In this document: piece by piece, positions 39,743 to 45,258 of the stretch
Numbering within the stretch: position 1 is the first letter of the stretch
Layout: the number at the start of each line of letters is the position of its first letter
Source of the DNA: Adineta vaga
Lineage: Eukaryota > Animalia > Rotifera
Length of the DNA stretch: 64,000 nucleotides
Assembly (NCBI GenBank): GCA_021613535.1
Contig: CP075494.1
Coordinates: forward strand, 5,332,001-5,396,000
Direction: 5' to 3'
Program-made: the position numbers and the translations under genes
The notes under the pieces: generated by a model
Databases searched by the model: none
Seen by the model: the letters and a program-made list of their open reading frames with translations, nothing else
What the model was told of the DNA's origin: nothing

Positions 39743-39849
39743 TTATTGTTTCAAATTCATAGTGTACACTACAGTTTAGATGTTTTTTAGTGCTTTTTAT
39801 TATATAAAAATAAAATAATATCTTTTCTTGTACGAAAAAAAATGAAGTC

Positions 39850-40734
39850 TTATTCTAGTTTTGTATGTGACGACGAAATATTAACACGATAGAACCATCG
39901 AGGATCAAATAGAAAGAAATGCATGGCAAGAATGCCTAATGTCAAATCAGTAAAATTAACAACCAATAAAACTCCAAGATGAAGAGCAAGAAAAGCAAGC
40001 CAATACGCTTTTCGAGTATGGTAGAAAAGCCCTAGAGGAAGAAATGTTATTTCAGCAATGAGTGATCCCCAAGTTGATATCTGAAGAATTAATGGATTTG
40101 CATTGAGTAAGTAATGACATAAAGCATTATCACGTGATAAAGGAGATCGTAGGACATGATGTAATGCACTACCATCAATCCAACTAGGTGATTGTAATTT
40201 ATGTAGACCACTAATTGTATAACCTAATGCATATAAAGTCCATCCACCCCAATATAACCATGGAAAAACTTGAGTGCTAAGTTCAAGTTTTTCTTCATCG
40301 TTGTTCTGTTGTTTCTTGATTTTGATTAAACTGAATGCTAATAGAAGTAGACCAACATAAGGAATGCCAGGATTTGAAATTAAAACATTTCGATTGAATA
40401 AACATGCCCAACCATACCATAAGACGAGCGCAACACACCGTGGAGCAAATATACGTAAGGCAAATACAACTGATAAGCACGATAAAATAATTAGAAATCC
40501 ACTTAGATATGTCGAAGAATGATCAATCCAATTAAGAATATTTGGAAAATATTCATACGTCGGACTCCATTGTGGATCAGCAATCATACCATCTCGACCA
40601 AATAATTCCGTAGCATGGGGTACTAATTGTGCAAAATGAATTGTTAGATAAAGACCAAAAAAGAATTCAAAGATTCGTAATTGACGTACAGTGTACCATC
40701 GTGTACATGTTGTTGATGACGTCGATAACGCCAT
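39850..40734 (-). CDS. HTTM-domain multi-pass membrane protein (vitamin K carboxylase/SdpB-like), intronless
   Basis: 7-8 hydrophobic segments; 'LFNRN..ISNP', 'GYTISGLHKL.SPSWIDG' and 'AEITFLPL...LHLG' fit the HTTM pattern. Confidence 0.72.
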   Translation of the reverse strand: MALSTSSTTCTRWYTVRQLRIFEFFFGLYLTIHFAQLVPHATELFGRDGMIADPQWSPTYEYFPNILNWIDHSSTYLSGFLIILSCLSVVFALRIFAPRCVALVLWYGWACLFNRNVLISNPGIPYVGLLLLAFSLIKIKKQQNNDEEKLELSTQVFPWLYWGGWTLYALGYTISGLHKLQSPSWIDGSALHHVLRSPLSRDNALCHYLLNANPLILQISTWGSLIAEITFLPLGLFYHTRKAYWLAFLALHLGVLLVVNFTDLTLGILAMHFFLFDPRWFYRVNISSSHTKLE

Positions 40735-41091
40735 TATGAGAAGAAATCACAGAAAAATATAACGACAAAAATCTATATATTTTTATGTAGAAAACGAGTA
40801 GAAGTAATTTACGCAAATATGACTCATAGTGACATCACGCTTTTGCCACGACACATAAAAAAACATTTACCGTAGATACATTATGTCGAACAAAAAAAAC
40901 AACTGATGCAACATGCTATATTATTCATATTATTATTGCTTTTGTGACGCTGTTTTTGAAAAGAAATATGCCGTAATTATGGAGTAAATATTGATGGTTT
41001 GAAAGCATACATAATCTTCACTTATTTACTATATGATAAACTTTGTTTCAGATTTTAATCTATTTCTAGTATTTAATCAGACGAAGACAAA
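40735..41091. promoter_or_regulatory. Putative bidirectional promoter with clustered bZIP-type motifs
   Basis: 357-bp gap between divergent ATGs containing TTACGCAA (40809), TGACTCA (40820), TGACATCA (40830) and TGATGCAA (40904). Confidence 0.4.
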
Positions 41092-42399
41092 ATGATCATT
41101 GGATTATTAATTATCGTTTTTGGACTTGCATGTCTTATGATACTCGAACGTCTTTTTCCAGATCAGCCATTAGTTTACGTACCTGGCTGGTGGAAACGTG
41201 TTTTATTGATCAATATCTATCAATTGATAGTTGTTGTGGTCGGTACTTATACTTGGGAAACATGGTTACCTGATGCTCATCTATTTCAATTACGTGCATA
41301 TGTTTCTCCAGTGATGGGTGGTATAATTGCTTATTTAATTCATACATGGGTCTTTTATTGGTTCCATCGTGCTCGACATAATGTTTACTTTTTATGGTTA
41401 TGGTTTCATCAATTCCATCATAGTGCACAACGTATTGAAGCAATTACATCTTTCTACAAAGCACCTCAAGAAATTCTTGTTGATTCGATTATTATGACAG
41501 TCCTACTCTATCCAGTACTTGGTCTTTCTCGAGATTCCAGTATTTGGCTAGCTGCATTCGCTGCATTTGGTGAATATGTTTATCATATGAATATCAAGAC
41601 ACCACAATGGATTGGCTACTTTTTTCAACGTCCTGAAGCTCATCGTATTCATCATTTGCGAAATAAACGTGATCATAGTAAAAATTATGGTGATCTACCA
41701 ATATGGGATATTCTAGGTGGTACATTTGAGAATCCAGAGAGAATGGATCGACCAACAGGCTTTGTGCCTGAAACAGAAAGCCGAGTAATGGATATGATTT
41801 GTGGTCGTGATGTACTTTTAGAAGGCAAACGAAAGACACGACAGGTTTATAAACAACGATATACATATGCTAGTATCATTGCCATATTATGGATTATTCT
41901 TGGACTTGGACAATCGATTGGTTATGTTTTTAACATGTCCAAAGTACGTGGTCTTAGTTTTGCTACAGTTGCTTCTCCATTACCTCTGGTTTTTTCTGTT
42001 GCTCCCAATGGAATGGAAACTTTTTCGACTAGTTTTCGTCTTCAAGTATTTGAACGATTAGAGAAAGAATGTGAACAGAATACAGAATGTAATAACGAGC
42101 AGCTTGTACAAGATACTGTATTGACACCACAACTTTATGGTACACTCAATGATAAACCATATAATTTACGAAATGCATATGGTGTTCTATTTTCTCATGG
42201 ACCTTTCTTTCAAGATGAAAAGACCATTGCTCTCCGTGATCGTGTTTTAAAACATAGCCTTTGTAATGGTGGTCCTCTAGCACGTGCTTTTCATTTACCA
42301 ACAAATACAAGTCGTATTGTTGTACAAGTACATTCGAATACTCAAAGTAAACGATTGAATCATCAAACTGATTGGACAATGTATATTATTTGTAAATAG
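41092..42399 (+). CDS. Fatty acid hydroxylase/sterol desaturase-superfamily di-iron enzyme fused to a TM segment and ~155-aa domain of unknown function, intronless
   Basis: His boxes 'YWFHRARH', 'HQFHHS', 'YHMN', 'HRIHH', then 'NYGDLPIWDILGGTF'. Second module 'ASPLPLVFS...METFS...LTPQLY...PYNLRNAYG'. Confidence 0.85.
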   Translation: MIIGLLIIVFGLACLMILERLFPDQPLVYVPGWWKRVLLINIYQLIVVVVGTYTWETWLPDAHLFQLRAYVSPVMGGIIAYLIHTWVFYWFHRARHNVYFLWLWFHQFHHSAQRIEAITSFYKAPQEILVDSIIMTVLLYPVLGLSRDSSIWLAAFAAFGEYVYHMNIKTPQWIGYFFQRPEAHRIHHLRNKRDHSKNYGDLPIWDILGGTFENPERMDRPTGFVPETESRVMDMICGRDVLLEGKRKTRQVYKQRYTYASIIAILWIILGLGQSIGYVFNMSKVRGLSFATVASPLPLVFSVAPNGMETFSTSFRLQVFERLEKECEQNTECNNEQLVQDTVLTPQLYGTLNDKPYNLRNAYGVLFSHGPFFQDEKTIALRDRVLKHSLCNGGPLARAFHLPTNTSRIVVQVHSNTQSKRLNHQTDWTMYIICK

Positions 42400-42651
42400 A
42401 TGGTTCTCATTTTTTATTTGTGCATTGTACTACTACTATAATCACGAAAGACAATGTAAAACTATATGAGTATTTAGATAATTTCATTTTTTTCCCTTCC
42501 CATTGTGATAATAAGAAGAAACTTAGAGAATATTTATTCTTTATTTTTTATGTATATATAAAGAAAAGGACTGAAAAGACTAATAGTGTTTTACATTGAA
42601 TATAAGACAGAAAAAAAGAAAGAAAGTGAGAACAATCAATAATGAACTGTT

Positions 42652-43971: not shown

Positions 43972-45258
43972 ATGGCTAAACATCAAGATAATTGGGTAAG
44001 ATAAATCATCTATAGAATAAACACAATGAATTTTTTTGTTTTATTTTAGGTAACTATTCCAAGTGAATTAATTGGTTCAATACCTCGTTCAGCTGAATTA
44101 GTTGAAGCACAACGAACGTGCAAAGATGGCGAATTAACCAGAGATCAATTAGCACTTTTACAAGAAAAAGATTTACAAACTGTTCTTTTCGAATTAGAAC
44201 AAACGGGTTCAATACAATTAACAGATGGTGAATTATCAAAACCATCATTTTTCAGTTATTCTGTATGTTATCTTTCCTCATATCTCTAATGGATTGATAA
44301 AAAAATCTTTTGTTATATAGATCTACGAATTAGCTCAATATAAATTTTCTTTTGATGAACGAAATCTTCCTACTATTACGGATGTTCATGGTCATCAACG
44401 TTCATTTCCTCAACTTATCAATGCACCATTTTGTTATGGTACATTTGCTGTTGAATATTTACGTACAGCACAAAAATATACTAAACATCCATTAAAACAA
44501 GCAATCATTGCTCCCTCAGCATTATCACTTGTTTATATGAATGAAACAATTGAACATTATTCAAGAGAAGATTTTCTTAATGATTTAATCAACGAAGCTG
44601 AAAAAGATGTTCGCCGATGTTTAAAAGCTGGTGCCGATAAAGTTCAATTAGATTTTGCTAAAACTGAATTAACTTTAAAAATAGATTCAAATGGAAACTT
44701 ATTAAAAGAATCTATTGAGATTAATAACCGAATGCTAGATCGTTTCAGTTCAGAAGAACAAAAGAAACTAGGAGTTCATGTTTGTTCAGGTTAGTTCCAT
44801 ATTCTCGTCATGAACATCAATATTATCGTTTGTTTTTCATTTCGTTTTCAGCTAATGAAAACGAAAAAAGTCAATCATCTCATGATATTGATTATTTAGA
44901 AGTTTTAGAAGAAGTTTTTCAGTTACATTTAAACAATTTTTATATACAATTATCATCGGAGACAGATCCAGAAAAGATTCTTTCACTTATTGGTCGACTT
45001 ATTCAACCACACCAACGTGTATTTATCGGTGTGATCAATCCAACAAGTCAACGTGTTGAAACAGTTGAAGAAGTTCGAGATATTGTTCTCAAAGCATCAA
45101 GATATATTCCAATGGATCAATTGGGTACAACTGATGATTGCGGTTTTGCTCCATATAATGATGTAGAATCGATTTCAAGAGAAAAATGTTATGAAAAGAT
45201 TCGAGCAAGAATCGAAGGTACAAAATTAGCTGAAGAAATCTTAAATCAACTATTATAA
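43972..45258 (+). CDS. Cobalamin-independent methionine synthase II-like (single-barrel MetE family); exons 43972-43995, 44050-44262, 44321-44789, 44852-45258
   Basis: 'IPSELIGSIPR', 'TDGELSKPSF', 'KQAIIAPSALSL', 'VQLDF', Zn ligands 'HVC' and 'LGTTDDCGF'. Introns keep the frame. Confidence 0.85.

Follow-up and report, generated by a model that had tools for sequence, protein, structure and literature searches.

A 64,000-nucleotide stretch of the Adineta vaga genome (assembly GCA_021613535.1, contig CP075494.1, positions 5,332,001 to 5,396,000 of the forward strand; hereafter the window, whose coordinates are used unless another contig is named) carries at 39850-42399 a pair of divergently transcribed genes that very probably came from a giant virus. 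One encodes an HTTM protein of 294 amino acids, related in fold to the membrane half of the vitamin K carboxylase GGCX, and the other a 435-residue protein in which a di-iron hydroxylase/desaturase is fused, through a transmembrane (TM) helix, to a domain of no named family, referred to here as the C-domain. The features of the pair are as follows.

39790..39849, minus strand: 3' untranslated region (UTR) of the HTTM gene, which resembles a vitamin K epoxidase (VKE); RNA-assembly contigs cover 39790-40743 (X1) and 39790-40752 (X9)
39850..40734, minus strand: coding sequence of the HTTM protein (GGCX-like, vitamin K epoxidase-like), 294 amino acids; codon of K179 at 40198-40200, codon of E228 at 40051-40053
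40735..40752, minus strand: 5'UTR of the HTTM gene, short; RNA contigs stop at 40743 and 40752
40753..40856, strandless: presumed compact bidirectional promoter, about 105 bp separating the transcript 5' ends, from RNA contig ends and sequence
40857..40983, plus strand: 5'UTR exon 1 of the fusion gene; contig X1 joins 40857-40983 to 41052-42515
40984..41051, plus strand: spliceosomal intron in the 5'UTR of the fusion gene, 68 nt, GT..AG; RNA joint 40983/41052, reading GTAAAT...TTTCAG
41092..42399, plus strand: coding sequence of the fusion protein, 435 amino acids, from the listing of open reading frames (ORFs)
41092..41841, plus strand: di-iron FA_hydroxylase/desaturase part, residues 1-250; Pfam domain at residues 78-211, 41323-41724
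41875..41961, plus strand: TM anchor, residues ~262-290, from hydropathy; helix 9-29 in the model of the C-domain
41962..42399, plus strand: C-domain, residues 291-435 and stop codon; an unnamed alpha/beta domain, a separate gene in bacteria
42400..42568, plus strand: 3'UTR of the fusion gene; RNA contigs extend to 42515 (X1) and 42568 (X9)

The start codons lie 357 bp apart and each coding sequence is uninterrupted in the ORF listing, as an earlier sequence-only reading of this DNA had described. Its statement that the genes are intronless holds for the coding sequences but not for the fusion gene as a whole, which is spliced in its 5'UTR. The same reading had set the pair against a window in which most conserved genes carry introns. 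Of the flanking genes, this is true of the TRAF/MATH gene upstream (zf-TRAF and MATH exons), which has three introns, but not of the KDEL-receptor gene downstream, whose ORF is uninterrupted too, so that an absence of introns from the coding sequence is not special to the pair. Transcripts of both genes are present, as separate contigs, in RNA assemblies from three studies, which can be recognized as RNA because the TRAF introns are spliced out in them. The 5' ends of the two transcripts are about 105 bp apart, in agreement with the earlier suggestion that linkage was kept under a shared promoter; this short divergent stretch is presumed to be a bidirectional promoter, although contig ends cannot pin the exact start sites. 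At their other ends, the TRAF and HTTM transcripts are convergent with 3' ends a few bases apart (39786-39790), and one RNA contig (X5, 38926-40691) spans both genes. The pair is located at 5.37 Mb of a 16.9-Mb chromosome, and a search of the 100.8-Mb, six-contig genome found each gene in a single copy and no paralogues or ohnologues of the pair.

The closest homologues are those of Adineta ricciae and A. steineri (85-86% identity) and of Rotaria (75-82%). A comparison of synteny across bdelloids, proposed in the sequence-only reading, gave an identical order in Rotaria sp. Silwood1, namely TRAF, HTTM (minus), fusion (plus) and KDEL receptor, and the head-to-head pair also occurs on a more divergent rotifer-like contig. 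Between Adineta and Rotaria (dS ~1), the ratio of nonsynonymous to synonymous substitution rates (dN/dS) is 0.10 for the whole fusion gene, 0.08 for its desaturase part, 0.15 for the C-domain and 0.16 for the HTTM gene. The pair is a single-copy, expressed and selectively constrained two-gene cassette.

Outside the rotifers, the best named matches of both genes are found in Tupanvirus, Sylvanvirus, Barrevirus and Harvfovirus (44-50% identity), and no other metazoan is present among the named homologues of either gene. At eight viral-type loci (L001, L003, L005, L010, L071-73 and L088), among them Barrevirus, Tupanvirus soda lake and a contig of 606 kb that carries a MutS-HNH gene, an HTTM gene is located directly upstream of, and divergent from, a gene encoding the desaturase+C-domain fusion. 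Fusion and divergent arrangement are thus common to the majority of the viral loci studied. HTTM, desaturase and C-domain are moreover joined into triple fusions in 15 proteins of ~700-760 amino acids, one of them from Harvfovirus. A scan of IMG/VR, restricted by its search pattern, recovered three loci. On the Barrevirus contig, a START lipid-transfer gene (L088:82-756, plus strand) directly adjoins the cluster of HTTM, desaturase and VKOR genes.

The same three components occur as separate genes in bacteria, as on a 62-kb Bacteroidota contig encoding a desaturase (243 amino acids), a C-domain protein (154 amino acids) and an HTTM-DCC1 protein (403 amino acids); the 154-residue protein is 30% identical to the C-domain of the window (E=4e-21). 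Species-representative genomes from about a dozen phyla yielded 60 such loci, some of them cut at contig ends. The three genes are adjacent in every one of the 47 complete loci and co-directional, in the order desaturase, C-domain, HTTM, in 40 of these. The HTTM protein is fused to a DCC1 domain in about two thirds of the loci, the C-domain gene (~150 amino acids) is directly upstream of the HTTM gene in most of the 60, and no further conserved neighbour was found in them. The statement in the sequence-only reading that desaturase, 'ASPLPLVF' protein and HTTM genes stand side by side in bacteria and giant viruses was thus correct. The ancestor of the cassette is a bacterial operon complete in itself, composed of a desaturase, a TM-anchored C-domain protein and an HTTM protein often fused to DCC1. 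In Opitutaceae and related loci (L034, L039, L041, L047, L059) the desaturase gene points away from those for the C-domain and HTTM, which means that a head-to-head order arose within bacteria too, and three proteins nested among the bacterial ones (P0220, P0223 and P0230) are apparent desaturase+C-domain fusions.

In a careful LG+G4 tree of the fusion protein, comprising 64 rows, bacteria (100/99) are split from the fused type (100/100), and the rotifers are monophyletic (100/99) and join Sylvanvirus together with P0158/P0169 (100/98); a larger quick tree and a quick tree under a mixture model agree with this topology. In the HTTM tree the rotifers join Sylvanvirus P0069 together with P0039 (97/98), and P0039 and P0169 are encoded on one and the same metagenomic contig, L073. 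Common closest relatives of both genes are what would be expected from co-transfer as one piece of DNA, and the congruent trees with their shared sister group bear out the proposal that a foreign pair had been acquired together. Forcing the rotifers outside the viral-type rows changes the log-likelihood by -137 units (approximately unbiased, AU, test, p=1.2e-6), so that of the prokaryotic or viral donor suggested earlier the viral alternative stands and the bacterial one falls. A giant-virus origin with co-transfer of both genes is therefore held with high confidence. The donor is a Sylvanvirus-like giant virus, and the cassette entered an ancestor of Adineta and Rotaria in one piece. It arrived with desaturase and C-domain fused in one gene and the HTTM gene placed head to head with that gene, and no fusion took place in the animal; the earlier notion that two parts were fused after the transfer is contradicted by the pre-existence of both the fusion and the head-to-head order in the viral lineage. 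The GC content of L073 is unlike that of the AT-rich Mimiviridae loci.

By sequence the HTTM protein is difficult to classify. It has no Pfam match at E<=1 and does not reach the gathering score of PF05090, a family for which the homologue P0059 scores 25.1 bits (cut-off 27.7) and with which many homologues have been labelled in advance. Its match to the SdpB subfamily (TIGR04033) is weak, 16.4 bits (E=5e-3) being far below the cut-off of 178.4, and a search of PDB sequences with an HTTM sequence profile found no GGCX chain. The AlphaFold model (pLDDT, the model's confidence, 92.7) is more telling. Human GGCX alone makes up the 15 best fold matches in the PDB (probability 1.00, TMq 0.52-0.62), with an overlap of ~276 columns, while the first match to another protein has E=0.2. 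Compared with GGCX structure 9bvq (TMq 0.60), the membrane fold, the catalytic lysine and its acidic partner are shared, but identity is 16-17% and the luminal half with carboxylase and clamp is wholly missing. The rotifer protein aligns solely to the N-terminal membrane half of GGCX and ends where the luminal carboxylase half would start, and the luminal region for carboxylation (including GGCX residues 374-418) is thereby absent; by this criterion the protein is no carboxylase in the sense of GGCX proper. K179 and E228 are invariant among 78 aligned sequences, and they align with K116 and E165 of the Harvfovirus vitamin K epoxidase-desaturase (VKED), which correspond to K218 and D263 of human GGCX (PMC13486548). 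The viral proteins likewise lack the luminal carboxylation region of GGCX (PMC13486548). The HTTM pattern noted earlier is upheld by this fold match and these two residues, and the protein is best regarded as having a GGCX-like membrane fold in which the catalytic lysine and acid are kept, that is, as a putative epoxidase.

The classification of the fusion protein is clear for its N-terminal part, which matches PF04116 (FA_hydroxylase) over residues 78-211 with 88.3 bits (cut-off 31) and has the complete set of His boxes, HRARH, HQFHH and HRIHH (H92/H96; H106/H109/H110; H184/H187/H188), invariant among its relatives. It shares these features with the sterol desaturases, sphingolipid hydroxylases and OlsE of the superfamily, but belongs to none of the characterised subfamilies and differs from them by an additional TM helix and an extracytoplasmic domain. 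The closest curated model, OlsE, is matched weakly (57 bits, cut-off 475), and no relative of the desaturase was found by sequence in the PDB. The hydroxylase is followed by a hydrophilic stretch, a TM segment (residues ~262-290) and the C-domain of ~145 residues, in which the motifs ASPLPLVF, ETF and PYN.RN.YG show no or almost no variation; the pattern given in the sequence-only reading, 'ASP.P.VF..ETFS..PYN.RN.YG', is accordingly real. A GPFF motif and two conserved cysteines, C391 and C434, are also present. The unknown domain which that reading had seen fused to a His-box di-iron enzyme still has no match to a named family or fold, even though its model is confident (pLDDT 88.6). Neither the C-domain of the window nor the bacterial 154-residue protein has a Pfam or NCBIfam match, no Pfam match exists in any of 62 members, and searches of the PDB gave nothing by sequence profile or, with Foldseek, at E<=1e-3. 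A wide fold search (VIA) gave no match at Z>=5, its matches being driven mostly by the TM helix so that the globular part was barely tested, and the fold matches in the Atlas were exclusively to unnamed bacterial clusters.

The sequence-only reading had pointed to SdpA, the small partner of SdpB, as a parallel. A language-model search does place the C-domain nearest the clusters containing PF17418 SdpA (0.92, 206/256 features) and DUF5819 (PF19136). However, alignment with hhalign of 62 C-domains to a 58-sequence profile of DUF5819, the related family, obtained by exhaustive search, gave a probability of 0.5%, and alignment to single sequences gave no support either; the C-domain is thus not detectably a DUF5819 member, and the SdpA link is not supported by this comparison with the related family. 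Among the genomes searched, the SdpA family matched the B. subtilis control genome only. At two Bacteroidota loci (L077:1375-2816 and L078:318-1836) a DUF5819 gene is followed directly by an HTTM gene, with no desaturase.

In the FA_hydroxylase superfamily the His boxes face the cytosol. As a single TM helix separates them from the C-domain, the latter would be expected on the opposite, luminal side of the membrane, as is the lysine pocket of GGCX. This is the side on which the two proteins are predicted to meet. Complex modelling, suggested in the sequence-only reading, in which the HTTM protein was paired with the TM helix and C-domain (residues 251-435), gave an interface score (ipSAE) of 0.86, against 0.01 for the best control, with at least 92% contact agreement across three runs and a partner pLDDT of at least 79. 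Among 78 solved complexes, 51 attained the mark set for this score, as did two of 108 mismatched pairs, in a calibration based mostly on microbes. In the model, residues 290-303 and 355-362 of the C-domain contact residues 105-133 and 178-185 of the HTTM protein, and the TM anchor contacts HTTM helices. The parts contributed by the C-domain contain the invariant ASPLPLVF (residues 294-301) and PYN.RN (residues 356-361), and those contributed by the HTTM protein are its most conserved motifs (105-133) and the segment 178-185, which includes K179. Together with the triple fusions, this model supports a physical complex between the HTTM and fusion proteins, which is considered likely.

A related module has been described in viruses. 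A putative vitamin K epoxidase-desaturase (VKE/VKED) was reported in PNAS in August 2026 from Klosneuvirus-like Mimiviridae, consisting of a truncated GGCX-like epoxidase fused to, or encoded opposite, a 'sterol desaturase', with an adjoining VKOR and expression late in infection, and its authors proposed a coupling of vitamin K epoxidation to lipid desaturation (PMC13486548). The pathway can therefore no longer be called entirely uncharacterised, as in the sequence-only reading, although its chemistry is still hypothetical. The resemblance is close: the N-terminus of Harvfovirus VKED and the rotifer HTTM protein share 49% identity, the fusion protein and the desaturases of Barrevirus and Harvfovirus 44-46%, the catalytic lysine and glutamate are common to both systems and the carboxylase region is missing from both, the split layout with opposite orientations is that of Barrevirus and Fadolivirus, and both rotifer proteins have their homologues in the viral pair, among whose sequences they nest in the trees. 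The rotifer copy differs in being part of an animal chromosome, where it has a rotifer promoter and a UTR intron, in lacking an adjacent VKOR, the host VKORs being on other chromosomes, and in being closest to Sylvanvirus rather than to the viruses of that study. The viral paper makes no mention of a C-terminal domain of the desaturase, DCC1, bacterial operons or rotifers (PMC13486548), and no link between bdelloids and the module was found in the literature searched.

A second parallel is offered by DUF5819, a small TM-anchored protein encoded beside HTTM-DCC1 and predicted to dock on the HTTM protein at the position of the GGCX clamp (10.64898/2026.08.19.745780). Like DUF5819 and the SdpA of B. 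subtilis SdpAB, the C-domain consists of an N-terminal TM helix and a domain of ~140 residues, is in bacteria encoded directly upstream of HTTM(-DCC1) and is predicted, in the present model as in the preprint for DUF5819, to dock beside the quinone pocket. The conserved motifs are others and DUF5819/SdpA pairs are without a desaturase, so that the likeness in docking and layout concerns the mode of working and not family membership.

The rotifer also possesses a vitamin K cycle of its own. A canonical multi-exon GGCX gene (PF05090, up to 143 bits) is located at C3:5567342-5568443, on another chromosome than the pair, and the animal therefore has an ordinary vitamin K carboxylase besides the truncated viral-type protein. 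Host VKOR genes are found at three loci, on contigs C1, C2 and C4, and are thus unlinked to the pair on C5; no VKOR adjoins the rotifer pair, nor is there one in loci L093 and L094. The VKOR ORF on C2 (C2:4634083-4634484; L080:1396-1956) is intronless, besides the intron-bearing copies on C1 and C4. Co-transfer of a viral VKOR is rejected, since the C2 copy is ~50% identical to the intron-bearing host copy on C1 and 36% identical to the Barrevirus VKOR, and it looks like a host paralogue or retrocopy.

From these data a working model may be proposed in which the two proteins would form one complex in the membrane of the endoplasmic reticulum (ER). The TM helix and the ASPLPLVF and PYN.RN loops would bind to the HTTM protein at its luminal face, next to the Lys179/Glu228 pocket, which would complete a GGCX-like quinol site without the carboxylase part and tie the di-iron centre, which faces the cytosol, to the HTTM protein. 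This subunit might then act as an epoxidase, oxidising a vitamin K-type hydroquinone with O2, and the di-iron domain could desaturate or hydroxylate a membrane lipid in an O2-dependent step that is coupled to this epoxidation or acts in sequence with it. Recycling of the quinone would fall to DCC1 in bacteria, to a VKOR encoded beside the module in some viruses and, in the rotifer, to the VKORs of the host itself; the same position in the module being held by DCC1 in bacteria and VKOR in viruses, a thiol-driven recycling of quinone is suggested. Taken as a whole, the picture of a viral cassette whose products form a complex for quinol-linked lipid modification is moderately favoured, while for the quinol-linked lipid modification itself the chances are put at slightly below even. 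A more far-reaching extension is speculative and rather unlikely to hold in full. This is that quinol epoxidase, docking domain and di-iron oxygenase constitute a hitherto unrecognised three-part enzyme class of bacteria, giant viruses and one animal lineage, in which the desaturation or hydroxylation of lipids would draw on a vitamin K/quinol-thiol pool rather than on NAD(P)H and cytochrome b5, the C-domain would be an obligatory subunit of the active site, and the cassette would have persisted in bdelloids over tens of millions of years for the sake of a modification of ER-membrane lipids unique among animals.

Several observations weigh against the main interpretation. The complex score is the model's own confidence, calibrated as stated mostly on microbes, and with the di-iron centre and the lysine pocket on opposite sides of the membrane a direct coupling is hard to picture. 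For the viral module, a link between epoxidation and desaturation has been put forward as a hypothesis, VKOR being the only component that has been reconstituted, and the quinol-binding N290 of GGCX is an isoleucine in the viral proteins (PMC13486548). With regard to the origin, the HTTM and fusion genes of Sylvanvirus are co-directional rather than head to head, unnamed metagenomic proteins make up most rows of the viral-type clade, L073 (JGI 3300055076, 13.6 kb), a member of the sister group of the rotifers, has 58% GC and is of unclear nature, virus or cell, and the group examined in the AU test was chosen after the tree had been seen.

Among the other functions conceivable for the cassette, the most plausible, though still improbable, is that an isoprenoid quinone or some other polyprenyl or sterol-like lipid, and not a fatty acyl chain, is converted by the two enzymes one after the other, for instance with the di-iron enzyme hydroxylating or desaturating the same quinone or lipid as is bound in the HTTM pocket. 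Members of PF04116 include sterol, carotenoid and alkylglycerol oxygenases, the weak match to OlsE leaves the class of substrate open, the module would need no other dedicated gene, and the START lipid-transfer gene adjoins it in Barrevirus. No finding obtained here separates such a role from acyl-chain desaturation, but many of the bacterial hosts and the rotifers differ in quinone and sterol content, which would favour a more universal substrate.

A little less probable is a role of the HTTM and C-domain complex in modifying or maturing a peptide or protein, by SdpAB-type toxin maturation or by carboxylation of the MloH/GGCX type, with the desaturase as an accessory. The characterised HTTM enzymes GGCX, MloH (cited in 10.64898/2026.08.19.745780) and SdpB all use peptides or peptide-like intermediates, the C-domain is placed nearest the SdpA cluster in the language-model search, and in bacteria DUF5819 likewise forms a pair in which an HTTM gene follows that of a small TM protein. 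Yet the 60 bacterial loci offer no conserved third or fourth gene as a possible substrate, the 294-residue protein is devoid of the luminal region that GGCX needs for carboxylation, Gla substrates were not found in the viruses (PMC13486548), and the profile-profile comparison shows no relationship of the C-domain to DUF5819. The desaturase is furthermore the most constrained part of the cassette and, in the majority of the sampled lineages, joined to the module by fusion, which is at odds with an accessory status.

As to the source of the pair, a direct bacterial origin, contamination or vertical inheritance with a secondary likeness to viruses is, within the limits of the sampling, rejected as very improbable: bacterial homologues are 41-51% identical, near the viral values, and many bdelloid genes are of bacterial origin, but bacteria fall on one side of both trees and the rotifers deep within the fused, DCC-less viral-type clade, the rotifer architecture (fusion, head-to-head order, no DCC1) is that of viruses and not of bacteria, contamination is countered by a chromosomal position between animal genes, a spliced UTR intron and the synteny with Rotaria, and vertical descent by the lack of other metazoans among the named homologues.

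The cassette represents a clean case in which two functionally linked genes passed from a giant virus to an animal, kept their order, gained host expression signals and came under purifying selection. New here are the animal copy, together with the evidence on its expression, intron, synteny and selection, the ancestral bacterial operon with DCC1, and the finding that the C-domain is a conserved third part of the module, which probably docks on the HTTM protein. The viral epoxidase-desaturase hypothesis thereby gains a culturable cellular host amenable to RNA study. What had been overlooked in the module, a C-domain predicted to lie on the HTTM active site and a bacterial-operon ancestor with DCC1 where viruses have VKOR, sharpens the experimental questions to be asked of it.

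Elsewhere in the window, two adjacent ORFs at 44537-45258 (plus strand), the second of which matches PF01717 (catalytic domain of cobalamin-independent methionine synthase, E=1e-6), may represent a split or intron-bearing MetE-like gene and another candidate foreign gene.

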